Positions 36,568 to 52,060 are shown, counted from the first letter of the stretch. The stretch: 64,000 nucleotides of DNA from Hyalangium minutum (GCF_000737315.1 NZ_JMCB01000032.1:1-64000), one strand, 5' to 3'. Numbers and translations are program-made. Notes: generated from the sequence alone by a model not told the origin.

Positions 36568-38736
36568 ATGCTGAAGAAGAGCGTCAAGATTGGTGACAGT
36601 GAGCTGAGCATCGAGGTCGGCCGTATGGCCAAGCAGGCCGATGGCGCGGTGGTGGTGCGCTATGGCGACACGATGCTGCTCGTCACGGCCGTGAGCGCGC
36701 GAGAGAAGAAGGACGTCGACTTCCTCCCGCTGACGGTGGAGTACCAGGAGAAGCTGTACTCGGCGGGCCGCATCCCCGGCAGCTACTTCAAGCGCGAGGG
36801 CCGCCTCACCGAGAAGGAGACCCTGGCGAGCCGTCTGGTGGACCGCTCCTGCCGTCCGCTGTTCCCCGAGGGCTACGCGTACGAGACGCAGGTCATCGCG
36901 GGCGTCATCTCCGCGGACCCGGAGAACGAGGGCGACATCCACGGAATCACCGGCGCCTCCGCGGCGCTGTGGGTCTCGGACATCCCGTTCAACGGCCCCA
37001 TCGCGGGCATCCGCGTCGGCCGCGTGGATGGGAAGTTCGTGGCCAACCCCACGCACAAGCAGCGTGAGCAGAGCGACATCGACCTGGTCATGGCGGTGAG
37101 CCGCGAGGCCATCGTCATGGTGGAAGGTGGCGCGGAGGAGGTCAGCGAGGCGGACATGGTGGCCGCGCTCGAGTTCGGCAAGCAGGCCGTGCAGCCCGCG
37201 CTGGACATCCAGGACGAGCTGCGCCGCGAGCTGAACAAGCAGGTGCGCTCCTACGAGAAGGCTCCCACCGTGGACGAGGGCCTCAAGGCCAAGGTTCGCG
37301 AGCTGGCCTGGGACGGCATCGTCAAGGGCTACACCATCAAGGAGAAGGGCGCTCGCTACGAGACGCTCGGCAAGGCCAAGAAGGAGGCCATTGCCAAGCT
37401 CAAGGAGCAGCTGGGCGACGCCTACACCCCGCTGGTCGAGAAGCACGCCAAGGCGGTGGTGGAGGATCTGAAGTACGAGCACATGCGCCAGATCACCGTG
37501 GACGGCGGCCGTATCGGCAACCGTGGCCACGCCGAGGTCCGGGCCATCACCTGCGAGGTGGGCGTGCTCCCGCGCACCCACGGCAGCGCGCTCTTCACGC
37601 GCGGCGAGACGCAGGCGCTCGTGGTCACCACGCTGGGCACCAGCGAGGATGAGCAGCGGCTGGAGCTGCTCAGCGGCCAGGCCTTCAAGCGGTTCATGCT
37701 GCACTACAACTTCCCGCCGTTCAGCGTGAACGAGACCAAGCCCCTGCGCGGCCCCGGCCGCCGCGAGGTCGGTCACGGCGCTCTGGCCGAGCGTGCGCTG
37801 CGCAACATGGCGCCCAAGAGCGAGAGCTTCCCGTACACCGTCCGCGTGGTGTCGGACATCCTCGAGTCCAACGGCTCTTCGTCCATGGCCTCGGTGTGCG
37901 GTGGCACGCTGGCGCTGATGGACGCGGGCGTGCCCATCAAGGCGCCGGTGGCCGGCATCGCCATGGGCCTGGTGAAGGAGGGCGAGAAGGTCGCCATCCT
38001 CTCGGACATCCTCGGTGACGAGGACCACCTGGGCGACATGGACTTCAAGGTCTGTGGCACCAGCAAGGGCATCACGTCCATCCAGATGGACATCAAGATC
38101 ACCGGGCTGACCACGGAGATCATGAGCCGCGCGCTGGAGCAGGCGCGTCAGGGCCGCATCCACATCCTGGGCGAGATGCTCAAGGCCATGCCGGAGGCGC
38201 GCAAGGAGATCAGCCAGTACGCTCCTCGCATCACCACCATCCAGATCCGTCCCGAGTACATCAAGAACGTCATCGGGCCGGGCGGCAAGGTCATCAAGGA
38301 CATCATCGCGCGCACGGGCGCCTCGATTAACATCGAGGACTCGGGCCGGGTGGACATCGCCAGCGCCAACGGGGACTCGGTGAAGGCCGCCATCGCCATG
38401 ATTCAGGCGCTCACGCGCGAGGCGGAGATCGGGAAGATCTACACGGGCACCGTGCGGAAGATCGCCGAGTTCGGCGCCTTCGTGGAGCTGTTCCCGGGCA
38501 CCGACGGCCTCATCCACATCTCCGAGCTGTCCGACAAGCGCGTGAAGAGCGTGTCGGACGTGCTGAAGGAGGGCGATGAGGTGCTGGTGAAGGTCGTCAG
38601 CATCGACAAGACGGGCAAGATCCGCCTGTCTCGCAAGGAGGCCATGGCCGAGCGCGCCGCCGCTCAGCAGCAGGCCGCCACGCCTCCCGGCGACGCCGCC
38701 GCGCCCGCGCCCACGCAGCCGGACGCGAAGGCCTAA
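36568..38736 (+). CDS. pnp: Polyribonucleotide nucleotidyltransferase
   Basis: [60 protein letters not shown] and S1 domains. Confidence 0.98.
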
Positions 38737-38745
38737 TCAGGCACC

Positions 38746-41700
38746 TCAGTGTGGGCCGGGGGGAGGCAGCTCCTCCCGGCTCTCGCGGGCCTCACTCCCG
38801 AGTGCCTGCTCCAAGCTGTGCCGCAGCCGTGAGCGCATGATGTTGGGCATTTGCTCCGCGCGGACCAGCGCCTCTTGCAGCAGCCGGATGGCCTCCTGGC
38901 GCTCGCCGCGCCGGAGCCGGGCCAGGGCCTGCACCTCCAGCACCTCCAGCGGCTCTTGCTCCACGGAGTACGCGTTCGAGCGCTCTTGGAGCTCACGCCA
39001 CTCTTCGGGGCTCGCAGGCCGGGCGCTGAGCTCCACCAACGAGAAGAGGACGGTCTCGGGAGGGCTGAACTTCTCCTCCTTGCGCTCCGCCATCACCTGG
39101 CGGATGGCGTCCAGCACCTGGCGCGCCTGCTCTTCCTTGCCTTCGTACGCCAGCACCCGCGCGTGCAGCAGCCGCCCCCAGGGCCTTGGCGCCACCTCGG
39201 GGTGCTTCTGCTCCAGCTCCACCGCCCGTGCCACGTGAGGCGCCGCCGCCTGCGTGTCTCCCGCCTGGAAGTACAGCTCTCCCAAGTTGATCTCCGCGAA
39301 GTACTCCCAGCCCGTCATCCCCAACTCGCGCCCCAACTGCTTGAACTGCTCCTGGTCCTCCACGGCTCGCCGCAGGTTGTTGCGCGCCACCCAGAGGTTG
39401 CGGCGGTTGTTGATGGCGCTGCCCAGGTGCAGCCGGTCCCCACGCGCGGCGGAGATGGTGATGCTCTCTTCCAGCACGCGCTCGGCCTCGTCGATGCGGC
39501 CCAGGTTGGGGAGGATGTGCCCCAGCAGGAGCAGGCAGACGACATGCGACTCGTAGCCCGCATCCCCCAGGTTTCGGGCCAGGGTCGCCGCCGACATCAG
39601 CACTTCCCGAGCCTTCTCCCACTGGCCACGGCGCAGTTGGCTCCGGCCCAGCCCCATCATCAGCCGCATCTGCAACAAGGGCGTGTCCAGCAGTGCGAAG
39701 GTGGCGACCTCCATGGCCTCGATGACGCGCTCCTCGGAGCGCGCGTAGTCGTTGCTCCAGTCGAGCGCCGTGGCCTCGTCCAGCAGCACCTCCACCTCCT
39801 CGGCCGCGTTGCCGAGCTGGTTCGCCATCCGCCGGGCGTGGGCCAGATCCTCCAGCGAGTCCTCATAGCGGCCCACCCGGTAGCGCATCAGCCCTCGGCC
39901 TCGGAGCGAGGTGAGGCAGCGCGGATCCTCGGTCTCTGGCAGAAGCTCCAGGATTCGGCTGTAGGTGGCCTCCGCCTCCAGGTAGGCATGGCGGTTGCGG
40001 GCCGCCTCGGCCAGATCAATGTAGAGGGCCGCGGCCTCCGAGAGCAGGCCCGCGGAGGCCGCGTGGAAGGCGAGCCGGGGCAGCAGCCGCTGCTCCACGG
40101 CACTGGCCTTCATATAGAAGAGGTGCGCGGCATGGTGGAGGCGCCAGCGCTGCTGCTCGGACAGTGAGCGCGCCACCTCCTGGCGGATGAGCTCGTTGCG
40201 GAAGCGCAGCCCCTCGTCAGGCTGCTCCACCAACAGCCCCAGTTCCACCAGGCGGCGGCTGGCATGGCGCGCATCCAGCGGGAAGTCAGCCGCTCCGTCC
40301 TCGCGCTCCAGGGCGCTCACCACGCCCTCCACCTCGTCGAGGGTGAAGTCTCCGCCGAGCAGTGCGCACAGGCGGGCGTGGGCAATCAACTCCGTGGGCA
40401 GAGCGCTGAGCTCGTGCTGAACGAGCCACTCGACCAGCCGGAGCTCCGGCATCCGCTCCAGCTCGTCCGTGGCCAGGAGCCAGCTCCCCCCGGGGCGCTG
40501 GCGCACCAGGCCTTGGCGCTTGAGGCCGCGCGCCAGCTCGACGATGAAGAGGGGGGTGCACTGGGCGCGCTCGGCCAGCTTCTCCAGGGCCTCGGAGGGG
40601 ACGTTCTGCGCGGGGAAGAGCCCGGTGCGGAACAGCTCCATTGCGTCCGGTAGAGGCAGCGGCCCGAGCTTCAAGATGAAGTGGCGCGCCGCGCGCGAGG
40701 CCCACTGGGGCCGGGTGCGCTCGAAGCCGGAGCGGGCCAGCACGCAGACCCAGAGGGCGCTCTTGGACTCGGCGCGCGTCGCGTACTCGAGCGCATCCAG
40801 GGCCACGTCTTCCGCGAAGTGGGCATCATCCAGCAGCAGCAGCAGGGGCCGGGTCCGGGCGGAGGCGGCCAGCAGCTCGCCCGTGGCGCGCACCGCCAGC
40901 GAGTGCAGTGCGCCTGGGGCGGCCGCCAGGCTTCGCAGCTCGGTGGAGGAGCCCCATCCCAGGTAGAAGGCCACCGCGGGCCATATCTCGTGGGCCAGGT
41001 TTTCCCCCAGTAACTCCACGCAGCGCGCGCGGCTCGTGGTCTCGCCTTCCTTCGATTGGGAGGACTCGCCCAGCGCCTCGCGGAGCAGCAGACGCAGGGG
41101 ACCTTCCTGGTCGCCATGGACGGGCTCCCGGGCGCGCAGCGAGACCACCCGGGCCTCGGGCAGTTGCTCCTTCAGGAGCTGGACCAGGGCAGTGGCGAGG
41201 TGGCTCTTGCCATGCCCCCGTTCTCCGAGCACCGAGGTGAGCGCGGGCGCCCGCTCCTCCACCGTCGCGCGAGCGCCGCGCACCAGCTCCGCTAGCTCCC
41301 CCTGCCGGCCCACCAGGACGCCATGGCCCAGGTGCACCACGCTGCTGTCTTCACGGGCCGCGGAGCGGATCTGCCGGAAGAGGCCCTGGCGCCCAGGGAC
41401 GGGCATGCAGGAGAGGTTAGGCAGCCCCTCCATCGCCGCGGTGGTCAGCAGCAGTGTGGGCGGGCCTTCCTCGGTGGGGTAGCGATCCGCCCGGGAGAGC
41501 AGCGGTGTCATGTAGCGCGGAGGGCCCTGGGGACGCCGCTGCACCCTCACCATGCCGACGTCCAGCAGGGCGGTGGCGGCCAGGCCCTCGGTGGAGAGGC
41601 GCTCGGCGCACAGGCGCGCGCGCTGGAGCGGGTTCGGCTCGGACTCCGGGTCGAACACGGCGGCGAAGCGCGTCCCCTCGCGGAACGCGAGCTGCCCACC

Positions 41701-42750
41701 CCCCTGGGTCAGCGCCTTCTGGACAGCGAGGGGGTTGGCACCGGAGCGCAAGAAGAGCAGGGCCACCGAGCGGTTCTGCGACGAGGACGCGAGCGGTGCC
41801 GGAGTCGTGGGGGAAGCCGGTTTCCCGTGGGAGTGCTCGAGCGCCTGCCGAAGGGCCACTGCCAGAGCCCGGGCCGAGGTGTAGCGGCGGGAGCGCTCCT
41901 TGGCGAGGCAGCACAGCACCACCTCCTCCAGCGCCGCGGGCACGGTGGCCAGCTCCGAGGGACGCGGCGGCCGGCGGGAGATGTGGGACTGGAGAACATC
42001 TGCCGCCGGGCCGAAGAAGGGAGGCCGGCCCGTGAGCAGCTCGTAGAGGATGACGCCGGCGGAGTACACATCCGTCCGCTCGTCCAGATCCAGCCGTCCC
42101 GCGCACTGCTCGGGGGCCATGTACTCGGCGGTGCCCGCGTGGGCGAGCGCCGAGGCCGTGTGGGCCTCGGGCGTGTCGGAGAACGGCTTTCTCGCCAGGC
42201 CGAAGTCGAAGAACCCCACGGTCCTCCTCGCCTGATCCAGGAAGATGTTCTCCGGCTTGAGATCACAGTGGATGAAGCCGCGGCGATGCACGGTGTCGAG
42301 CGCCTCGGCCAACGCCAGCCCCCAGCGTCTCATCTCGGACGCCGGGTCGCGCGGCTGCGTCAAGTGCTCGGCCAGCAGCGGGTGCGCAATAAACTGCATG
42401 ACGATGTAGGCGGTGCCATCGCTCAGCCAGCCCGGCTCATACACCTCTGGCACGGTCGGTGGGCCAATGGTTCGCAGCGCCTCGAACTCCAGACCTGGCT
42501 CGTTTCCGCCTGAGATGTGCGCTTGGTGAAAGACCTTGATGGCGACTCGCAGGCCATCGCGCTGCCGCCGCGCGGCCAGCACCGTGCCGAAGCCTCCCCG
42601 GGAGATCGTGTACTCCAGCTCATAGTCGGCGATCTCCACCGCGGGCAGCGGAGGCCGGGAGGCGGTGAGCTCTCGGGCGGGAGAGGCCCCCTGAAGACAA
42701 AACAGGTGGCCCCCCTGCCAGCGCTGCCCGCATGTCAGGCAGCGCGGCAT
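38746..42750 (-). CDS. Ser/Thr kinase - degenerate cyclase-like domain - AAA/STAND ATPase - TPR protein
   Basis: N-terminal CLTC..C; SRGGFG, HCDLKPEN, DFG, YMAPE; LVGRQGEL, Walker A GERGHGKS (41203-41226), Walker B LLLLDDAH; TPR-like C-terminus; no TM seen. Start reassigned to ATG 42750. Confidence 0.88.
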   Translation of the reverse strand: MPRCLTCGQRWQGGHLFCLQGASPARELTASRPPLPAVEIADYELEYTISRGGFGTVLAARRQRDGLRVAIKVFHQAHISGGNEPGLEFEALRTIGPPTVPEVYEPGWLSDGTAYIVMQFIAHPLLAEHLTQPRDPASEMRRWGLALAEALDTVHRRGFIHCDLKPENIFLDQARRTVGFFDFGLARKPFSDTPEAHTASALAHAGTAEYMAPEQCAGRLDLDERTDVYSAGVILYELLTGRPPFFGPAADVLQSHISRRPPRPSELATVPAALEEVVLCCLAKERSRRYTSARALAVALRQALEHSHGKPASPTTPAPLASSSQNRSVALLFLRSGANPLAVQKALTQGGGQLAFREGTRFAAVFDPESEPNPLQRARLCAERLSTEGLAATALLDVGMVRVQRRPQGPPRYMTPLLSRADRYPTEEGPPTLLLTTAAMEGLPNLSCMPVPGRQGLFRQIRSAAREDSSVVHLGHGVLVGRQGELAELVRGARATVEERAPALTSVLGERGHGKSHLATALVQLLKEQLPEARVVSLRAREPVHGDQEGPLRLLLREALGESSQSKEGETTSRARCVELLGENLAHEIWPAVAFYLGWGSSTELRSLAAAPGALHSLAVRATGELLAASARTRPLLLLLDDAHFAEDVALDALEYATRAESKSALWVCVLARSGFERTRPQWASRAARHFILKLGPLPLPDAMELFRTGLFPAQNVPSEALEKLAERAQCTPLFIVELARGLKRQGLVRQRPGGSWLLATDELERMPELRLVEWLVQHELSALPTELIAHARLCALLGGDFTLDEVEGVVSALEREDGAADFPLDARHASRRLVELGLLVEQPDEGLRFRNELIRQEVARSLSEQQRWRLHHAAHLFYMKASAVEQRLLPRLAFHAASAGLLSEAAALYIDLAEAARNRHAYLEAEATYSRILELLPETEDPRCLTSLRGRGLMRYRVGRYEDSLEDLAHARRMANQLGNAAEEVEVLLDEATALDWSNDYARSEERVIEAMEVATFALLDTPLLQMRLMMGLGRSQLRRGQWEKAREVLMSAATLARNLGDAGYESHVVCLLLLGHILPNLGRIDEAERVLEESITISAARGDRLHLGSAINNRRNLWVARNNLRRAVEDQEQFKQLGRELGMTGWEYFAEINLGELYFQAGDTQAAAPHVARAVELEQKHPEVAPRPWGRLLHARVLAYEGKEEQARQVLDAIRQVMAERKEEKFSPPETVLFSLVELSARPASPEEWRELQERSNAYSVEQEPLEVLEVQALARLRRGERQEAIRLLQEALVRAEQMPNIMRSRLRHSLEQALGSEARESREELPPPGPH

Positions 42751-42853
42751 GGTGTTCTCCCCAATGCCAGACAGGACCCACGTACGGCAGGCTGCCGGAT
42801 GTTCCCCCCCCGCATCGTCATGGGGGGCATCATACCTCACACGCCGGGTGACT

Positions 42854-43870
42854 TCATGGGCAGGGCCCACAATCCATGCAGCTGTCCGGAGTGAACCCCG
42901 TGCCACAGGACTCGCTGATCTGGCAGACGCCATCCCCACAGACATTGATGTCCGAGAGCTGGATCCGCGTGGTGATCGCCGGGTAGGCCTTCCCGTTGTA
43001 GCTGCACGTCACGTAATAGTTGTTCTGGAGGTCCGGCTTGCAGATCTCCGAGCAGGGGTCGACCTGATGGATGGGGGGGCACTTGTCCCCGGTGCCCGGC
43101 GTCTTCAGGCCGCAGGCCCTCACGCTGCTCTTGTCGGTGGACAGGCGGGCGTCACTGCCCGCGTAGACGCCCTCGCCATTGAAGATGTTGCCGAAGAAGC
43201 AGGCCTCTCGCTGGGCGAAGGTGGTGAACTCATGCGTTCCCACGGGGATCGGCGTCCCCAGGGCATCCCTCCCCTGGATCGAGATGTCCACCGCGCGGCC
43301 GTATTTGTTGGTGTACGCCGCCATGCAGGCCGTGATGAGCTGCTGCTCGAGCTCGGTGGCGGGCAGGCCGCTGGCCCAGCCCGGGGTCAGACCCCACTTT
43401 CCATTCCAGACGTATTGGATGCCCGTGGTGGGGTTGGTCCACGTGCGGCTGCTCCCATCCGAGATGCCACAGTCCACCACGTAGTGCATGACCATATTCG
43501 CCAGGGAGACATCCTGGTTGAACCAGGTGATGAACGCGCTCGTATTCATCGCGTTGGTGATCAATCCCGAGGTGCTCAAGCCGTTGGTAGCCATTCCATT
43601 GGTAGCCATTCCATTGGTAGCCATTCCATTGGTGGCCATTCCAGTTTTGCTTGGAGAATTGAGCAAGTCGCTCTTGCTGCCGAGCACCGGTGAGGCGGTG
43701 TCTGGCAACTCCTGCGCTGAGCCCTCTTCTTCCCAGGCGGGCTCTCCGCAGCCTCCTGCCAAAAAGCCGAGCAGCACCGCTGCCGGCAGGGTGGAACATA
43801 CACTTCGGCCGTACCGCGAACCGCGGTTCATCCAACGATCTGGTGTCATCTGACCCCCCAGTACTGCCAT
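42854..43870 (-). CDS. Cys-rich putative lipoprotein with GMATN pentapeptide repeats (start may be 43831)
   Basis: Hydrophobic LPAAVLLGFLAGGC; (GMATN)4; many Cys; C-terminal CGDGVCQISESC...CMDCGPCP. Confidence 0.8.
   Translation of the reverse strand: MAVLGGQMTPDRWMNRGSRYGRSVCSTLPAAVLLGFLAGGCGEPAWEEEGSAQELPDTASPVLGSKSDLLNSPSKTGMATNGMATNGMATNGMATNGLSTSGLITNAMNTSAFITWFNQDVSLANMVMHYVVDCGISDGSSRTWTNPTTGIQYVWNGKWGLTPGWASGLPATELEQQLITACMAAYTNKYGRAVDISIQGRDALGTPIPVGTHEFTTFAQREACFFGNIFNGEGVYAGSDARLSTDKSSVRACGLKTPGTGDKCPPIHQVDPCSEICKPDLQNNYYVTCSYNGKAYPAITTRIQLSDINVCGDGVCQISESCGTGFTPDSCMDCGPCP
43581..43640 (-). repeat. 15-bp tandem repeat x4 encoding GMATN
   Basis: CCATTGGTAGCCATT-type units at 43581, 43596, 43611 and 43626. 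Confidence 0.9.
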
Positions 43871-43905
43871 GACTCTGCTTACGCAGAGGTGCTACTGCAG
43901 TCTGC

Positions 43906-45285
43906 TCAACCAGAGCAGGTGCGTCGTGCGTCGTGCGTCAGAGAGAAGCCGCTGGCATCCCTGAGAACCCAGCCAGCGGTGTCCGCCAAGGGACCGCCGG
44001 TGATCTCAATGCCATCCGCGTCTCCATGCGCCTCGACCTGTCCCACGTGAACACAGACATGAACATTCACACGCGATTCGGCTACCCGTGTCTGTGCATG
44101 TTGATGAAGCTCTCGCGCTACGGCCAACAGCGCGGACGGCTCCACCTCGGGGGATTCATCGAGCAGACGAACTCCCAGCAACGTCATCCCCGTCTGCTCG
44201 GCGAGGATGAAGCCCGTGTCGCGCAGCTCCTGCTCCAGCGCGTCGAGCACGTCACTCACGGTGCTGTAGGCCGCATCGTCCTCGGCTCCTTCGGAGATGA
44301 CGGCCTCCGCATGAAGGACGAAGGCGCGGGCGCTCCGGCTGCCCGTGGGATTCTGGATGGCAGCCCCGGGAGCCACCGCGTCGCGGAGCGCGGCGATCAG
44401 GGCGGTGACCGTCTGGAAGCGCCGGCTCGCTTCCTTTTCCAGGCACCGCAGCACCACCGCATCCACCGCGGGGGACACGGGGACGAGGGCGCTGGGCCGG
44501 GGAGGAGGAACTTCCAGGTGCATGCGCTCCACCTCCAGCCGATTCTCCGACTGGAAGGGGTAGTGGCCCGTCAGCATCCGGTACAGCAGCACCCCGAGCG
44601 CGTAGATGTCTGTATAGGGACCAATGGTGCCTCCGCGGATCTGCTCGGGTGACATCGCATGGGTGGTGCCCAGCCGCTGGCCATCCGTCGTCAGGCCGGG
44701 CTGCCCGGGCTCGGGGTGGATGATCTTCGCGATGCCGAAGTCGAGCAGCTTCACCTGCGGCGGCTCTCCATCGGAGACCACCGCCACGTTGCTCGCCTTG
44801 AGATCCCGGTGCACCACGCCTTTCTCGTGGGCCGCCTCCAGCGCGGCGCAGACGGGCTCCAGGAACTCCAACGCGCGGGCCGGGGTGAAGCGGCCTCGCT
44901 CCAGCAGCAGGTGAGTGAGGGTCCGCGCCGGCAGCAGCTCCATCACGTAGTAAGGACTGCCATCCGGCAGAACGCCAAAGTCGTGAATGTCAACGATGTT
45001 CGGGTGGCGGATCTTGTTGATGACCTGCGCCTCACGCACGAAGCGCTGCAACATCTCGCCCTTGTCCGTGAGATGGGAGTGCAGCACCTTCACCGCTGCG
45101 CGCCGCCCGAGGATGCGATGCTCCGCCTCGAACACGGCGCCATGGCCCCCGAGGCCCACCACTGACCGCAGTACGTACTCGCCGGCCAGAGAGCCAGGGC
45201 CTAACTTCCACGCAGAGCGCGCCTCTCGTGAGAGGAGCGCCGTTGCACCGAGTGGGGGCGAGTCAGTGCCAGGCGTGTCTTGCAT
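43906..45285 (-). CDS. Cytoplasmic Ser/Thr kinase with C-terminal degenerate nucleotidyl-cyclase-like domain
   Basis: VGLGGHG, AAVKVL, HRDLKASN, DFG, MSPE; C-terminal VHVCVHVGQV resembles the cyclase GIHxGxV strand. Confidence 0.88.
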   Translation of the reverse strand: MQDTPGTDSPPLGATALLSREARSAWKLGPGSLAGEYVLRSVVGLGGHGAVFEAEHRILGRRAAVKVLHSHLTDKGEMLQRFVREAQVINKIRHPNIVDIHDFGVLPDGSPYYVMELLPARTLTHLLLERGRFTPARALEFLEPVCAALEAAHEKGVVHRDLKASNVAVVSDGEPPQVKLLDFGIAKIIHPEPGQPGLTTDGQRLGTTHAMSPEQIRGGTIGPYTDIYALGVLLYRMLTGHYPFQSENRLEVERMHLEVPPPRPSALVPVSPAVDAVVLRCLEKEASRRFQTVTALIAALRDAVAPGAAIQNPTGSRSARAFVLHAEAVISEGAEDDAAYSTVSDVLDALEQELRDTGFILAEQTGMTLLGVRLLDESPEVEPSALLAVARELHQHAQTRVAESRVNVHVCVHVGQVEAHGDADGIEITGGPLADTAGWVLRDASGFSLTHDARRTCSG

Positions 45286-45494
45286 GGCTTACATTTTACG
45301 GTCCCGTGACACGGCCCCTGCATTACCCAGGGGACGGGGGAAAGCGTCATCAACTTAACAGAACTGCCAAGGAGTTCTCCAGGGGGCTTGGTTTTTTCAC
45401 GGGGCGTGCGGCTTGGTGTCGGGCAGGAGACAGGGAAAGATCGGGGAAGGGGCCTGTGCGTTGCAATCCGAGCCCTCCCTGAAGTGGAGCTTCC

Positions 45495-46292
45495 TTGTCC
45501 CTGCGCCCGCTGACGCCTCCCGCCTCGCCGTCCGGCCCTCTCTCGGGGGTGTCGCGCTTCATCGGCGGCTTCCGCTGGGCCTTCATGCCCCTGGGGCTGT
45601 TGGCCCTCATCGCCGTGGGGGTCCACGCCGCCGCGGACACGCTGGACGAGCGGCTGCTGTCGCTGGTGGACATGCTGGACGCCGCGTTTGACCGGCTCGT
45701 GGGCTCCGCCACCTTCACCGAGGGGTTGGTGGACCTCATCTCGCTGGAGGAGCGCACCCAGATTGCCCGGGGCCTGGCCCTGGCGTGGGAGTTGGCCGTG
45801 GATCTGGTGCTGGCCCTGCCGGCGCTCGGCTACCGCGAGTCGAAGCACACCGAGGAGGAGCCCTGGAGGAAGTACCTCGCACAGGACACGCGTCCCACCT
45901 GGCGTCAGCTCTTCGCGCGCTTCTGGGAGAAGCCCACCACGCTGCGCTGGACGCGGCCGCTCGCCACGGCGGGCGTCGTCGTCGCGGGAGCGTGCGCGGT
46001 GGCCCGGCTCGTCCAGGGCACGGTGTATCTGTCCTGGCGCGGGCTGCTGGGGGAGGGCGCGGCGGACGCGGCGGCAAGAGGCCTGGCGCTCGGGGCGCTG
46101 GTGGGCATTCTCGCGACGCTCGGGTGGCGCGCGGTGCTGCGAAACCTGCAGCACGCGGACACCGTCTCCGAGGAGAACATTCGCGGCCGGTGGAAGGCCT
46201 TCTCGTATGGGCTCGTGGGCTCGGCGCTGGCGGTGCCCCTGGCACTCGCCGCGGCGCTGGATGCGTCTCCTGTCCTCTCCTTCTGGCGGTGA
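45495..46292 (+). CDS. Hypothetical integral membrane protein
   Basis: Several hydrophobic segments; 9 bp upstream of the M23 gene. Confidence 0.75.
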   Translation: MSLRPLTPPASPSGPLSGVSRFIGGFRWAFMPLGLLALIAVGVHAAADTLDERLLSLVDMLDAAFDRLVGSATFTEGLVDLISLEERTQIARGLALAWELAVDLVLALPALGYRESKHTEEEPWRKYLAQDTRPTWRQLFARFWEKPTTLRWTRPLATAGVVVAGACAVARLVQGTVYLSWRGLLGEGAADAAARGLALGALVGILATLGWRAVLRNLQHADTVSEENIRGRWKAFSYGLVGSALAVPLALAAALDASPVLSFWR

Positions 46293-46301
46293 GGTGGCCT
46301 C

Positions 46302-47312
46302 GTGTTCTCTCGTAACGCACGCGGCCTGCTCGACTTCCTGATGGCCTCGCTGTGCCTCTGGACGGCGTACCACCACACGCCCGCGGGTGCGCTGGTGCGG
46401 CGGGCCTCGGCCTGGGCCTTCAACACCCGGAGCACCGCCCGCCCCTTGCTGGCCTACTACGACGGGGTGAGCAGCACTGGCGTCACCACCTCCGCGCTCG
46501 TTCCCGAGGTACCCCTGGTGCGGCCCATCTCCGAGGCGGGCGCGCTGGCCTATGGGACGCACCTCGCGCTGAAGGGCCTGCAGCCGAAGGCGCAGAAGCC
46601 CGCTCTGGCGCTGGCCGCCGAGCTGGGCCTGTCCTCCGAGGCGCTGCTGGATGCTGCGAAGGGCCCCGTCACCGCGCGCAAGCTCCTGGAGACGCTGGAG
46701 GGAGAGTTCCCGAGCGAGGAGGCTCGCCTCACCGCCGTGTTCGCCGGACGCATCCCCGCGCGCTATGCGCTGGAGCGCGTCTCGGCGGAGGGGGGCTCGC
46801 CCACGCTGGAGCAGTTGGCGCGGCAGCTCCCTCCCGGATTCGAGGACGCGCAGGTGGCCGCGAACCAGGCGCTCGCGCTCACCACCGCGTTCGGGCTGGC
46901 GTGGCCCGTGCCGGAGAACACGCGTGTCGCCAGTCCCTTCGGCTACCGGGTCCACCCCACGTTGGGCTACCGCAAGCTGCACACGGGCGTTGACCTGAGC
47001 GTGCCCCAGGGCACTCAGGTGCACGTGGTGGATGACGGTGTGGTGCGCCGCGCGAGCGAGGATTCCGTGAACGGCCGGGTGCTCATCATCGACCACGGCC
47101 GGGGCGTGTCGACGGCCTACTGCCACAACTCGGAGTTGCTCGTGAAGGTGGGGCAGCGCGTGAAGCGGGGCGAGCTCATCGCGCATTCGGGCAACACGGG
47201 CCGCTCTACTGGGCCCCACCTCCACTATCAGCTCGAGCTGGCCTCGCAGCCCGTGGATCCGCTGCGCTTCCGCAGGGGCTCGCTCCCCGTGGCTGCCGGC
47301 TCGCGCCCTTGA
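46302..47312 (+). CDS. M23 family metallopeptidase
   Basis: SPFGYRVHP...HTGVD (HxxxD), YCHNS, GNTGRSTGPHLHY (HxH). Confidence 0.92.
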   Translation: MFSRNARGLLDFLMASLCLWTAYHHTPAGALVRRASAWAFNTRSTARPLLAYYDGVSSTGVTTSALVPEVPLVRPISEAGALAYGTHLALKGLQPKAQKPALALAAELGLSSEALLDAAKGPVTARKLLETLEGEFPSEEARLTAVFAGRIPARYALERVSAEGGSPTLEQLARQLPPGFEDAQVAANQALALTTAFGLAWPVPENTRVASPFGYRVHPTLGYRKLHTGVDLSVPQGTQVHVVDDGVVRRASEDSVNGRVLIIDHGRGVSTAYCHNSELLVKVGQRVKRGELIAHSGNTGRSTGPHLHYQLELASQPVDPLRFRRGSLPVAAGSRP

Positions 47313-47347
47313 GCACGGGGCGCGTTTCATGAGGCCGTGGGAGGGGA

Positions 47348-47403: not shown

Positions 47404-47522
47404 CTGCGCCCCCCTTGCCAGGAGAGCAGGGCGGCAGGCTGGGGGCACCGCGTTTGCTAATCCCCCGGAAGCACCGCTAGAACTGTCGGCCACTTCACTG
47501 TCACTCGCAGAGAACCCCCGTC

Positions 47523-48341
47523 ATGGAAGATCTCGTCAAGCAGTTCCAGTCCCTCGCGCTGACCGAGGCGTTGCCCTTCTTTCTCAAAATGGGCGGCGCT
47601 TTCATCCTGTGGTTCGTAGGACGTGCGATTATCAGCGGCTTCCGGCGCGTGCTGTCCCTGACGCTGCAAAAGCGCAAGCTGGACGCGACGCTGATCCGCT
47701 ACGTCGAATCCCTCTTCTCCGGCATCTTCACCATTCTCCTGCTGCTCGCTTTGCTGGGGCTGATCGGCATCGAGACCACCTCGTTCGCCGCGCTGCTGGC
47801 CGCGGCGGGCATCGCCATCGGCTCGGCGTGGGCCGGGCTGCTGGGCAACTTCGCTGCGGGCATCTTCTTGCTCGTCCTCCGCCCCTTCCAGGTGGGCGAT
47901 GAGATCAACGCAGCCGACGTCAGCGGTGTCGTGCACGAGATCGGCCTGTTCGTCACCGCCATCGACACGCAGGACAACCTGCGCATCTTCGTCGGCAACG
48001 GTCAGCTCTTTGGCGGCAACATCACCAACTTCAGCCACCACCCCCACCGCCGACTCACCATCAAGGTGCCGGTCATCCACGGCAGCGACATCGCGTCCGT
48101 CAAGCGCGCCCTGGCCGAGCATGTCGCGAAGGCCCCGGACGTGCTGGCCGAGCCGGCCGTCTCCATCGAGATCGCGGAGTTCGCGCTGGCCGGGCCCGTG
48201 CTCGCGGTCCAGGCCTGGTGCCGTCCCCAGCACGCCAACGCGGTGCAGGACGCCATGGGCCACGCCATCCAGGATGCCATGGTCTCGGCCGGGTACGCCG
48301 TTCCATTGAACTCGAACTGGATCCTTCCCAAGGCGGGTTGA
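47523..48341 (+). CDS. mscS: Small-conductance mechanosensitive channel
   Basis: TM helices, LLGNFAAGIFLLVLRPFQVGDEI, GVVHEIGLFVT, ITNFS. Confidence 0.92.
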   Translation: MEDLVKQFQSLALTEALPFFLKMGGAFILWFVGRAIISGFRRVLSLTLQKRKLDATLIRYVESLFSGIFTILLLLALLGLIGIETTSFAALLAAAGIAIGSAWAGLLGNFAAGIFLLVLRPFQVGDEINAADVSGVVHEIGLFVTAIDTQDNLRIFVGNGQLFGGNITNFSHHPHRRLTIKVPVIHGSDIASVKRALAEHVAKAPDVLAEPAVSIEIAEFALAGPVLAVQAWCRPQHANAVQDAMGHAIQDAMVSAGYAVPLNSNWILPKAG

Positions 48342-48396
48342 TCCTCGACAGCATCTCTGCTGACGGACCCTGGCGCCCGTGTTACTCCCGGGCGCC

Positions 48397-48855
48397 ATGT
48401 CCGCTCGCTTGACCCTCCAGGTCCTCCGCGTTCGTCCCAACCATCCCGATCCTCTGCCGCTCCCCCAGTACGAGACGGCCCTGGCCGCGGGCATGGACTT
48501 GAGGGCGGATATCGATGGCGAGCGGACGCTTCAGCCCCTGGAGCGCATGGCCGTCCCCACCGGGCTCGCCCTGGCGTTACCTCCCGGTTACGAAGCACAG
48601 GTGCGCCCCCGCTCCGGGCTGGCGCTCAAGCACGGCGTCACCATGCTCAACTCGCCGGGTACCATCGATGCAGACTACCGGGGAGAGGTCCATGCCATCC
48701 TGGTGAACCTCTCCCAGGAGCCCTTCACCCTTCGTCGAGGCGACCGAGTCGCCCAGCTCGTGGTGGCTCCTGTCACGACAGCGGAGCTACAGGAGGTCTC
48801 CGTCCTGGACACCACCCCCCGGGGGGAGGGTGGGTTCGGATCCACCGGCCGATGA
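48397..48855 (+). CDS. dut: dUTP diphosphatase
   Basis: [48 protein letters not shown]. Confidence 0.97.
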
Positions 48856-48899
48856 TGGTTCGTTCCTTGCTGGTCTGGGAGGGGGCAGGATAAGAGGGA

Positions 48900-51122
48900 G
48901 TGGGCCAGCAGCACCCGGCCCCTGGAAGGACCTGGAGCCCATCCCTCGTGCTCTGCTACCGCTGCGGCAGCCACGTCCCTGATTCGAGCGATACCTGTCC
49001 CACCTGCGGTCAGAAGTACGACGCGGCGGCCAGGCAGGCTGCGAGTCCGTCCGCGCGCCGGAGGGGGAGCATCGAGGGCGCGCCCTACAAGCCCGGGGAC
49101 GTCATTCACTCGCGCTTCTCCATCCTCGAGATGATGGGCGCAGGGCCCGTGGGCTACGTCTTCCGGGCGATGGATCAGCAGCATGACGTGGAGGTCGCCC
49201 TCAAGGCGATCAACCCCCGGCTGCTCCAGGAGCCCGAGGAGCGCACCCAGTTCTCCCTGGTCCTCAAGGTCGGCAAGAAGCTCAGCCACCCCTACCTGTC
49301 GCGCGTCTACGAGGAGGGCTTCGACGGGGACCGGCCCTTCTTCACCTCCCAGCTCATCGAGGGGATGACGCTGCGGCGGATGATGGAGATGCGGGTGGCC
49401 AAGGGCCAGCCCTTCACGCTGCGCGAGGTGGAGCCGCTGCTCGGCCAGATCGCCGATGCGCTCGATGGCGCCCACCGCTACGGGCCACACTCGGACCTCA
49501 AGCCCGAGAACATCATCGTCCTGCCGGACGTGCTCAAGGTGACCGACTACGGGCTCTCCCTGGGCATTCCCCGGCCTCCCTTCGTCCAGGCTCAGAAGGG
49601 CTACCGCGCCGAGGCCTACATCGCTCCCGAGTACGTGTCGGGCAGCGAGATCGACGCGCACATGGACATCTACTCGCTCGCGGTCATCGTGGGCGAGATG
49701 CTCACCGGGCTCATGCCGGACGCGGATGGCATCCCCGAGGTTCTGATGAAGAACCCGGACCTCCCGCCTGCCTTCGAAGCCCTCTACCGGCGCGCGCTCA
49801 ACGCCAACCCGCTGGCCCGCCCGAAGTCCGCGGGCGAGTTCGCCGCCGAGTTCTCCTCTATCGTCGCCAAGGGCCCGGGCGGCTCGAACAGGATCTCCCG
49901 GCACGCACAGCCCCTGGGCAGCTCGGCATTGACGCACGCGGCTCGCAGCGCCGAGAAGCCGCCGCCGCCCGTCCCCACGGATCAGCTTCCCATCGCCAGC
50001 GTGTCGCCACCGGTGCCCAAGGCTCCTTCGAAGGAGGAGCCCCCCGTCGACGCCACCCAGCCGATGGACGCGGACATGCTGGCCCAGATCATGGCCGCGT
50101 CCCCCGCCGTCGCGAAGGCCGTGACCGCGCAGCGCCCTGTCATCAAGCCTTCCGGGGGAAACACGGGGCCGGTGGGCCGGGCCTCGGCTGCGTCCACGCC
50201 CTCTCTTCATGCTCAGGGCATCGAGGACCAGCCCACGGATCCGGCCCAGGCCGTGACAGCGCTTCGTCCGCCCCCGCGCGCTCAGCCGCCCGCTCCCCGT
50301 CAGCCCGTGAAGCGTGTGGAGAAGCGGCCCATGTCCGCCGTGTGGCTCGTGCTGCTGACGCTGGCGGGGCTGGCGATTGGCTCGGGTGTGGGCTACCTGG
50401 TGCTCAAGCACCTGCGCTCGCAGCAAGCGGAAGATGGCTCGGGCACCGTGACGGCTCCCACGCCCCCGTCCGAGCCGCGCGAGGCCCTGCCGCCTCCCGC
50501 GGAGCCCGAGGTGCACGACCCCATGGCCCCCGCGGGCAAGTGCCCCCCCGGCATGAAGCTGGTGAGCGGAGGGGCCTTCAAGCGGGGCGTGGCGCAGGAT
50601 GACCCGGACAAGATGTTCGACGAGCGCCCGCTGGAGAACGTGCAGGTGCCCTCGTTCTGCATCGACGAGTACGAGTTCCCCAACAAGCCAGGGGGGCTGC
50701 CCACCGTCGGCGTGAACTGGGATGAGGCGAAGCAGTCCTGCGCGAGCGTGGGCAAGCGGCTCTGCACGGAGGACCAGTGGGAGAAGGCATGCAAGGGCCC
50801 AGGCAATGCGCGCTTTCCCTATGGGAACGAGTTCGACGCGAACGTGTGCAACACCGACGACGCGCAGGGCCGCGATCGAGAACTGGCCGAGGGCGGGCGC
50901 TTCCCGCAGTGCCGCTCGGCCTACGCCGTGGCGGACCTCTCCGGGAACGTGGCCGAGTGGACGGCCTCGGACTTTGGGGACAGCCTCTCGAGCAAGACCC
51001 AGAAGGGTGGGGCGTACGACCGGTCCGTCCATGCCGTGCGCTGCTCGGCGCGGATGAAGGGAGTCCCCACGGAGCGCAAGCCCACCGTGGGCTTCCGCTG
51101 CTGCGCGGACGTCCTGCAATGA
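48900..51122 (+). CDS. Zn-ribbon - Ser/Thr kinase - TM - FGE-sulfatase (SUMF1-like) domain protein
   Basis: CYRCG..CPTCG; GAGPVG, VALK, HSDLKPEN, DYG, YIAPE; TM; FCIDEYE, KRLCTEDQWEKAC, DLSGNVAEW, VGFRCC. Confidence 0.9.
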   Translation: MGQQHPAPGRTWSPSLVLCYRCGSHVPDSSDTCPTCGQKYDAAARQAASPSARRRGSIEGAPYKPGDVIHSRFSILEMMGAGPVGYVFRAMDQQHDVEVALKAINPRLLQEPEERTQFSLVLKVGKKLSHPYLSRVYEEGFDGDRPFFTSQLIEGMTLRRMMEMRVAKGQPFTLREVEPLLGQIADALDGAHRYGPHSDLKPENIIVLPDVLKVTDYGLSLGIPRPPFVQAQKGYRAEAYIAPEYVSGSEIDAHMDIYSLAVIVGEMLTGLMPDADGIPEVLMKNPDLPPAFEALYRRALNANPLARPKSAGEFAAEFSSIVAKGPGGSNRISRHAQPLGSSALTHAARSAEKPPPPVPTDQLPIASVSPPVPKAPSKEEPPVDATQPMDADMLAQIMAASPAVAKAVTAQRPVIKPSGGNTGPVGRASAASTPSLHAQGIEDQPTDPAQAVTALRPPPRAQPPAPRQPVKRVEKRPMSAVWLVLLTLAGLAIGSGVGYLVLKHLRSQQAEDGSGTVTAPTPPSEPREALPPPAEPEVHDPMAPAGKCPPGMKLVSGGAFKRGVAQDDPDKMFDERPLENVQVPSFCIDEYEFPNKPGGLPTVGVNWDEAKQSCASVGKRLCTEDQWEKACKGPGNARFPYGNEFDANVCNTDDAQGRDRELAEGGRFPQCRSAYAVADLSGNVAEWTASDFGDSLSSKTQKGGAYDRSVHAVRCSARMKGVPTERKPTVGFRCCADVLQ

Positions 51123-52060
51123 GGAACGTTGGGCTCGCATTGCTGCTCGCGCTGTTGCTGCCAGGACTGGCCAGCGCTCAGGGCCGCCGCAAGGTGGTGG
51201 CCGTGAAGTCCGCCTTGCTGGCGCCCTATGCCTCCGTGGTGGCCGGCTTCCGTGCCGAGGCCGATGCCGACGTGCAGGAGGTGATGCTCGACGAGAGCTC
51301 CTCCGCCGCTGCCCGGCTCTTCAAGACGCTGGCGATGCAGAAACCGGCCCTGGTGTTGGCCATCGGGCCGCTGGCCGCCAACGCGGCGCGCCGCTCCCTG
51401 GGCGAGGACATCCCCGTCCTCTTCGTCATGGTGCCCTACTTCGAGAAGTACGGCCTGGAGGGCCCCAACGTCACCGGCATCTCGCTCACGAGCGACTACA
51501 CCCCGGAGCTCGGCGCGCTCAAGGCCCTGTCTCCCAAGGTGAAGCGGGTGGGCATGCTCCATGATCCGCGCTTCTCCGCGAGGCAGGTGCAGACGGCGCA
51601 GGAGGCCGCCAGCGGACTGGGGCTCACCATCGTCCCACTGGAGGTGGAGGCTCAGGCCCGCGTGGAGAAGGTGCTGGGCGCGGCCGCCGGCAAGGTGGAC
51701 GCCCTGTTGATGGTGGCCGACAAGACGGTGGGCAACGCCGCCGTCGTCCAGGCGCTCATCGCCTTTGCCTCCGAGCAGAAGCTCCCCCTGGTGGCGCTCA
51801 CCTCCAGCCAGGTGAAGGAGGGCGCCACGCTCGCCCTGGCCCCGAGCCCCACCGCCATCGGCCAGCAGGCGGGGCGGCTGGCCAACCGCATCATCCATGA
51901 GAAGGTGAACCCGGGCGCGATGGCGGTGGCGCAGCCCGAGAGCATGGACCTGGCGATCAGCCTCACCGCTACCCGCAAGTTGAGCTCCTCCTGCGACGCC
52001 GCGATGGAACTGCTCCGCTACGCGGCGAAGCGGGACTTTCCCGTGAAGGTCCACGAGTGA
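51119..52060 (+). CDS. ABC-type substrate-binding protein (TrpX/DUF534-like), no permease nearby
   Basis: Signal peptide; LVLAIGPLAA, NVTGIS, KRVGMLHDP, IGQQAGRLANRI; ATGA overlap with the kinase stop. Confidence 0.85.
   Translation: MRNVGLALLLALLLPGLASAQGRRKVVAVKSALLAPYASVVAGFRAEADADVQEVMLDESSSAAARLFKTLAMQKPALVLAIGPLAANAARRSLGEDIPVLFVMVPYFEKYGLEGPNVTGISLTSDYTPELGALKALSPKVKRVGMLHDPRFSARQVQTAQEAASGLGLTIVPLEVEAQARVEKVLGAAAGKVDALLMVADKTVGNAAVVQALIAFASEQKLPLVALTSSQVKEGATLALAPSPTAIGQQAGRLANRIIHEKVNPGAMAVAQPESMDLAISLTATRKLSSSCDAAMELLRYAAKRDFPVKVHE

Follow-up and report, generated by a model that had tools for sequence, protein, structure and literature searches.

Since 2006, the Ser/Thr kinases PktA5 and PktB8 have been associated with Esp, a developmental timer of Myxococcus. 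In M. xanthus, the genes lie in the order pktA5 (MXAN_0930), espA, espB (0932) and pktB8 (0933) (2026 preprint); PktA5 acts with PktB8 and EspB, in a complex that may interact with EspA (MrpC-regulon review), and the turnover of MrpC is promoted by EspA and EspC. PktA5, PktB8, EspB and EspA make up a described developmental-timing system of Myxococcus, and the parts of the literature on Esp, PktA5 and PktB8 covered here name neither the cue nor the mechanism by which the kinases cooperate, and mention neither cyclase-homology domains (CHDs) nor a lipoprotein. Here we analyze three genes, A, B and C, at positions 38,746–45,285 of a 64,000-nucleotide stretch of Hyalangium minutum DNA (GCF_000737315.1, NZ_JMCB01000032.1:1-64000), below called the window. 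An initial annotation had described them as a kinase–lipoprotein–kinase/STAND triplet and knew of no functional description; the homologs of the two kinases are, in fact, PktA5 and PktB8 of the espAB locus.

Other described systems resemble parts of the triplet. Class III cyclases such as mammalian adenylyl cyclase (C1/C2), soluble guanylate cyclase (alpha/beta) and Rv1900c act as dimers arranged head to tail, and one of their sites can be degenerate. Members of TIGR03903 (TOMM system kinase/cyclase fusion) presumably consist of a kinase, a CHD and a large C-terminal region in the same order as C, and we take the cyclase domain in the description of that family to occupy the position of the cyclase-like domain of C. 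In the actinobacterial PknG pathway, the lipoprotein GlnH signals through the transmembrane (TM) protein GlnX to the TPRs of the soluble kinase PknG, the substrate of which is the FHA protein GarA/OdhI. Among STAND NTPases, MalT is activated by inducer-driven multimerization (PMC4381067).

Results

Genes of the Triplet

We consider it probable that the triplet is a cytoplasmic Ser/Thr-kinase signaling set, a compact paralog of the PktA5/lipoprotein/PktB8 genes that lacks espA and espB. A scan of the window for open reading frames (ORFs) recovered the three co-directional genes in the order A, B, C on the minus strand, with 35 nt between A and B; features below are on this strand unless stated otherwise. 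Gene A (43906–45285; ORF scan and Pfam) encodes a soluble PktA5-type Ser/Thr kinase of 459 aa, in which the kinase domain (residues 38–292, 44410–45174; Pfam PF00069, E 3e-43) is followed by a class III CHD-like domain of about 140 aa (residues ~317–459, 43909–44337). It is an RD Hanks kinase with intact motifs GLGGHG, AAVK, HRDLKASN and DFG. Gene C (38746–42750; ORF scan, Pfam and NCBIfam) encodes a PktB8-type protein of 1334 aa, composed of a non-RD kinase domain (41863–42624; Pfam; HCDLKPEN, with motifs SRGGFG, VAIK and DFG intact), a CHD-like domain of about 140 aa (41371–41781), a P-loop NTPase of type AAA_16 (40765–41316; Pfam, E 1.9e-9) with Walker A GERGHGKS and Walker B LLLLDDAH, and a TPR sensor region (38851–40008; Pfam TPR_12, TPR_2 and, weakly, TPR_MalT). 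Between them, on the same strand, gene B (42854–43870; ORF scan, alignment and hydropathy) encodes an exported Cys-rich lipoprotein of 338 aa from an uncharacterized myxobacterial family.

The G-loop, the VAIK Lys, HxD...N and DFG of Hanks-type Ser/Thr kinases are present in both A and C. Protein C has the make-up of a STAND protein, a P-loop NTPase with Walker A and B motifs followed by a repeat sensor and preceded by an N-terminal effector, and the Walker motifs are kept in its relatives. Its TPR region matches the TPRs of LGN/Pins in the Protein Data Bank (PDB), while a sequence search found no solved PDB relative of the NTPase. The long ORF of C opens at 42945 and overlaps B; the ATG at 42750 is preceded by a ribosome-binding site (GGGGAG), and the N-terminus read from it, MPRCLTCG, agrees with the family consensus, so that 42750 rather than 42945 is most likely the start. 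Numbered from the opening at 42945, Pkinase spans residues 108–361, the CHD-like domain ~389–525, AAA_16 544–727 and the TPRs ~980–1365. The N-terminus of C (42676–42750) carries a short MPRCLTCG...C motif, kept as RCxxC...C in the family; it may form a small zinc ribbon that precedes the kinase.

Much of what the initial annotation had read from the DNA was upheld. Protein A, called a soluble kinase, has the Pfam Pkinase domain and, like C, no TM helix by hydropathy (maximum 19-residue Kyte–Doolittle value, KD19, 1.39); the proposed order of kinase, cyclase-like domain, P-loop ATPase and TPRs in C was recovered by Pfam together with structure prediction; and B, described as a Cys-rich lipoprotein with GMATN repeats, has a lipobox, 16 Cys and four GMATN units.

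Relation to the espAB Locus

To place the triplet among its relatives, we used a genome scan anchored on B, which gave 79 loci (numbered L001 and onward), followed by tblastn searches with parts of A, B and C. An arrangement linked to pnp, as in the window, was found in L001 (B-A-B-C), L002 (A-B-C) and L005 (A-A-B-C), and a look-up anchored on A added L081, where the flanks are the same (kinase-FGE, dut, M23, A A B C, pnp rpsO truB rbfA). A is tandemly duplicated in L005 (7076–9865) and L081 (8460–11353), and in L001 an additional B lies upstream of A. A second arrangement, C, OPT, FHA-PAS-HK-REC, A, B, was seen at about 25 loci of Myxococcus, Corallococcus, Pyxidicoccus, Hyalangium and Archangiaceae. 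Of its two middle genes, both on the opposite strand, one encodes an OPT transporter and the other a hybrid kinase of the composition FHA-PAS-PAS-HisKA-HATPase-REC, in agreement with the descriptions of EspB as a putative transporter and of EspA as an FHA hybrid kinase. The second arrangement matches pktB8-espB-espA-pktA5, and the window therefore holds an espAB-less paralog set. The remaining orders were B-B-C (L004), divergent C and B (L034), B followed by a reversed C and A (L040), and FHA-HK, B, C, B in an Anaeromyxobacteraceae metagenome-assembled genome (MAG; L062). The triplet is by no means a chance grouping, for it recurs with the same flanks in five genomes, and dozens of others have it in different arrangements; the initial annotation had proposed it as a conserved unit, and it is one, across rearrangements and one joint duplication.

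PktA5 and PktB8 share their domain order with the window's A and C and show significant similarity over the full length (tblastn), with identities between the window and Myxococcus of ~70% for the A kinase, ~43% for the A CHD and 51–62% for C. The 90% identity cluster of the Myxococcus A homolog includes ABF87320.1 of DK1622 and AAF87929.1 of DZ2, and in the Myxococcus locus a B homolog follows the A homolog, as B follows A in the window. The copies differ in their setting: in Myxococcus they flank espA/espB, the position that would mark orthologs, whereas in the window A, B and C are contiguous beside pnp and espA/espB are not nearby. They differ also in the catalytic loop of C, which reads HCDLKPEN in the window and HCDLKPEH in Myxococcus and Corallococcus. 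In neighbor-joining trees of A, of B and of C, the pnp-linked copies form a separate clade each time, indicating that the three genes were duplicated together. Because the window has no OPT or FHA histidine kinase gene, the clades are separate and one Hyalangium MAG holds both a pnp-linked (L005) and a second-type locus (L076), the window genes are paralogs and not orthologs of pktA5 and pktB8. The 64-kb window holds no further copy of any of the three genes.

The comparison was extended to five distant proteins of the C type, with CHD identities of 30–39%; DNA was retrieved for four of them. In all four of these loci, an A-type kinase with an A-type CHD adjoins C (hidden Markov model E 1e-24 to 4e-15), and in three of the four, so does a B homolog with NG-x-x-x repeats. 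That A-type and C-type kinases are neighbors at almost all of the loci covered fits their working as a pair. In the distant set, an FHA-GGDEF gene is present in L084 and in the fifth locus (P0240), the latter also having an OPT gene. The FHA-GGDEF protein (L084 6738–7667, and P0240) stands in place of the FHA histidine kinase, and in these distant relatives the kinase pair may feed cyclic di-GMP synthesis.

Several features of the family were seen in passing. The catalytic loop of every C-type kinase is non-RD, with HCD or HGD; in the PktB8-type kinases of Myxococcus, Corallococcus and Pyxidicoccus (L075, L008, L010, L024 and others) the catalytic-loop Asn has become His, while the clade of the window keeps the Asn. 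At L075 (11008–12006) and about 20 other esp-type loci, the gene immediately after B encodes a small histidine kinase (HisKA/HATPase) that shares ~50% identity with the EspA-like protein over the kinase core of the latter. Records named "Comamonas sp. KCTC 72670 / JC664" (L067, BNCN01000015.1, and P0134) contain a typical Myxococcus esp locus with proteins 89–94% identical to those of Myxococcus sp. Y35, and the organism name looks wrong.

Cyclase-like Domains of A and C

That both kinases carry a cyclase-like fold, as the initial annotation had suggested, was supported by structure prediction. The AlphaFold2 (AF2) model of the A domain (predicted local distance difference test, pLDDT, 86.7; predicted TM-score, pTM, 0.80) has the topology beta-alpha-beta-beta-alpha-beta-beta, and its best PDB match by Foldseek is Rv1900c (1ybt; E 1.5e-7, query TM-score, TMq, 0.64); for the C domain (pLDDT 92.3, pTM 0.85), it is Cya2 (2w01; E 2e-8). 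For each domain, 50 of the top 50 PDB matches are catalytic domains of class III adenylyl/guanylyl cyclases, with a probability of 1.00 and a TMq of 0.45–0.66, the modest TM-scores being explained by the trimming and divergence of the domains. At the sequence level, PF00211 matched neither domain at E ≤ 10 in Pfam and none of 37 C-type relatives, the cyclase domains were undetected by NCBIfam, and profiles of the domains retrieved no cyclase among PDB sequences. A concatenated profile of the two CHDs, meant to retrieve both families, returned almost only A-type kinases. As sequence detection was negative or not significant, the call of the fold rests on AF2 and Foldseek. The cyclase-like domains of both kinase families were previously unannotated; clustering at 50% identity divides the C-type CHD into 175 clusters, and almost all of these represent proteins of ~1300 aa with the architecture of C.

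The canonical pattern of metal-binding Asp residues, the absence of which had been noted initially, was not found in either family. With the conserved motifs placed on the predicted strands, a near-invariant Glu (E327 in A) stands in A-type domains at the first metal Asp position, at the end of beta1, Met or Thr at the beta2–beta3 turn where the second Asp would be, and Asp and an invariant Trp at the Asn and Arg positions. C-type domains have a variable residue at the first Asp position and Thr at the second, such that neither family has an acidic residue at the beta2–beta3 turn. Judged on the modeled folds, both are best called catalytically dead pseudo-cyclases. Nothing indicates that they are complementary halves of one joint active site: neither brings the full set of metal ligands and, with catalytic residues missing from both, A and C cannot assemble a site. 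They share the fold of the asymmetric class III cyclases but differ from them in that both partners lack the catalytic residues and escape detection with PF00211.

The Lipoprotein Family

Protein B begins with a signal peptide (43748–43870), the sole hydrophobic stretch of the protein (KD19 1.69 at residue 24), ending in the lipobox LAGG-C41 within the sequence LLGFLAGG-C41. The lipobox Cys is nearly invariant among 20 relatives, and B thus has both the signal peptide and the lipobox Cys of a bacterial lipoprotein. It has neither Lys at +2 nor Ala at +7, which by the rules of M. xanthus weakly suggests a location in neither the inner membrane nor the matrix. A run of pentapeptide repeats, recognized from the sequence and by comparison with the family (43553–43645; four GMATN, GLSTS and GLITN), precedes a conserved Cys-rich globular domain (42857–43552) of 230 aa, with 14 of the 16 Cys of B, all conserved in the alignment, and the C-terminal end CGDGVCQISESCG...DCGPCP (pattern CGDGVCQxSESCG...DCGPCP).

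The family is myxobacterial, with 444 matches and many copies per genome. Apart from the repeats, B had no match in Pfam, NCBIfam or the profile search of the PDB. The globular domain is conserved at 45–70% identity across the family, and every member, linked to kinases or not, has five to nine near-identical NGLxx units. We considered the repeat unit as a paralog-specific code and rejected it, as NGLST is common to many paralogs, kinase-linked and orphan alike. Kinase-free paralogs also occur as tandem pairs with differing repeats (NGLAF beside NGLSL) in Archangium and Vitiosangium (L017, L019, L027, L041 and L046). A relationship to MlpA was likewise rejected: the B homologs of L080 and L081 have no Pfam match, the MlpA-matching gene of L082 is distinct from B, and M. 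xanthus MlpA (MXAN1451) is encoded at a locus other than that of the B homolog. The L082 gene (3020–3994; PF27412 in a precomputed Pfam table) lies directly upstream of an A-like kinase at a distant locus, and its product belongs to another lipoprotein family, not related to B, that is found next to these kinases.

Neighboring Genes and Base Composition

On the C side, pnp (36568–38736, plus strand; Pfam) is convergent with C, as it is in L001, L002, L005 and L081; upstream of A, the plus strand encodes an M23 peptidase, MscS, a dUTPase and a Ser/Thr protein kinase (STPK)-FGE-sulfatase. With a divergent neighbor on one side and a convergent one on the other, A-B-C forms a self-contained unit. 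Three long minus-strand ORFs (45201–47330, 47457–48494 and 48675–51140; 345–821 aa) were considered as further operon members and rejected as antisense artifacts, since their translations are low-complexity Arg/Gly/Gln sequence and the plus strand encodes recognizable proteins; their apparent tblastn conservation in relatives merely mirrors the genes opposite. The plus-strand kinase fused to an FGE-sulfatase domain (48900–51122) has one predicted TM segment near residue 484 and occupies the same position in L081.

The triplet had been described as locally AT-rich, which holds for B (GC 0.62; GC at third codon positions, GC3, 0.81) and A (GC3 0.80) but not for C, the GC of which (0.707) exceeds the window mean (0.685). 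Horizontal transfer, or an island, was considered and rejected: the reduction is modest and confined to B and A, and the GC3 of dut is equally low.

Discussion

Apart from PktA5 and PktB8, the described systems agree with the triplet only in part. The TIGR03903 model is matched by C over the NTPase region after the CHD and by A over the kinase, with 132–133 bits each, but with a cutoff of 705 bits these scores are far too low, neither protein matches the cyclase part of the model and there are no TOMM biosynthesis genes nearby. The PknG pathway shares with the triplet a soluble TPR kinase, an adjacent gene for an exported lipoprotein and a read-out by an FHA protein. The two are not related in sequence, however; B is not a solute-binding protein, the triplet has no TM adaptor, PknG lacks the NTPase and CHD of C, and the PknG system has one kinase where the triplet has two. 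With the STAND NTPases MalT, AfsR and PknK, C shares an N-terminal effector and an AAA_16 domain followed by TPRs, including weak matches to TPR_MalT, but its effector is a kinase plus a pseudo-cyclase.

In the mechanism that we propose, C would be the switch. A cue taken up by its TPR region would lead the Walker A/B NTPase to STAND-type oligomerization, gathering and thereby activating the non-RD kinase domains. Protein A would serve as the obligate partner kinase, recruited possibly through contact between the CHDs, which would act as dimerization or docking modules and not as enzymes; a heterodimer of A and C through these domains is a plausible candidate. The phospho-threonines made by the pair would probably be read by an FHA output encoded elsewhere in the genome, of the EspA type in the ancestral locus and of the FHA-GGDEF type in distant relatives. 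Protein B, exported and probably anchored in the outer membrane, is genetically coupled to the kinase pair; a cue from B would have to be relayed across the membrane by another protein, which at the ancestral locus could be the OPT protein EspB, and GlnH-GlnX-PknG-GarA would be the precedent.

Several observations weigh against this proposal. Aligned with hhalign, the CHDs of A and C reach a probability of only 2–14% in a colinear alignment, and the register of their catalytic residues was set by motifs and AF2 secondary structure rather than by superposition. The window contains no OPT transporter, EspA-type FHA protein or TM adaptor, so that neither the output nor a link to B is encoded locally. 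Most of the loci were found via B, which biases the counts of A-B and B-C neighbors; roughly one in two of the loci anchored on B has no kinase within the 10-kb flanks and, given that the repeats are the same family-wide, the function of B may be independent of the kinases. Finally, pktA5 and pktB8 were identified from gene order, domain content and accessions and not from a named record.

An alternative is that A and C act in one pathway without forming a heterodimer, their CHDs only homodimerizing or serving as intramolecular spacers between kinase and NTPase, and B being merely co-regulated. The marginal profile similarity of the two domains agrees with this, as do B and C lacking an A within reach in L004, L034 and L062 and the tandem A-A beside a single C in L005 and L081. 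On the other hand, it is difficult to see why a small stand-alone kinase would carry a CHD if it had no partner, and at each of the four distant loci anchored on C, the kinase adjoining it carries an A-type CHD; we regard this explanation as clearly less probable than the proposed A-C partnership, while taking it seriously. It is unlikely that the domains, though not enzymes, bind a nucleotide or cyclic nucleotide and gate the kinases as allosteric sensors. Their retained fold, modeled with high confidence, the near-invariant Glu at the first metal position of A and the clustering of invariant residues (G-G-P, W and H) at the equivalent of the substrate-binding helix would suit such a role, but the second metal position is not acidic in either family and the Asn and Arg positions have been replaced.

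The initial annotation had gone further and seen in the triplet a candidate NLR-like module for signaling, defense or kin recognition; it is the reading as anti-phage defense or kin recognition which we now think very improbable. C does combine a STAND-like NTPase with a repeat sensor, the GC3 of B and A is somewhat lowered, A and C match the PADLOC kinase models PD-T4-6, mad6 and MkoA, and A matches PDLC04041, a sub-model of PD-T4-6, over its full length. These are generic kinase models, however: those for PD-T4-6 also call the housekeeping PASTA kinase of every S. thermophilus genome, B and the NTPase-TPR part of C have no PADLOC match, and similarity to phages is confined to the kinase domain. 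Neither a specific defense match nor an island or mobile context was found; the flanks (pnp, rpsO, truB, dut and the M23 peptidase) are housekeeping genes in stable synteny, and the homologous locus is kept across genera beside developmental regulators. Kin recognition is unsupported because the globular domain of B is conserved rather than polymorphic or hypervariable.

A more speculative possibility, to which we give a very small chance, is a peptide circuit of the Rap/Phr (RNPP) kind in a Gram-negative: NGLxx units of B would be excised outside the cell, imported by an OPT protein (EspB) and bound by the TPRs of C, whereupon the STAND switch would fire, A and C being held together by a heterodimer of the dead cyclases. 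The perfect repeats, the recurrent OPT gene and the TPR sensor keep the idea alive, and the sharing of NGLST by kinase-linked and orphan paralogs weakens it. If true, such a circuit would reveal what the Esp developmental timer responds to, an input long unknown.

For the Esp kinases as a family, the analysis adds two pseudo-CHD domain families and the domain of B, all unannotated, the near-universal pairing of A with C, and a conserved lipoprotein partner. The kinase pair is accompanied by a conserved exported lipoprotein, by outputs with FHA domains and by an OPT transporter. The comparison provides concrete handles on the system: a candidate docking interface between the CHDs, a candidate extracytoplasmic component in B, and a generalization of the logic of Esp to an FHA-GGDEF output.

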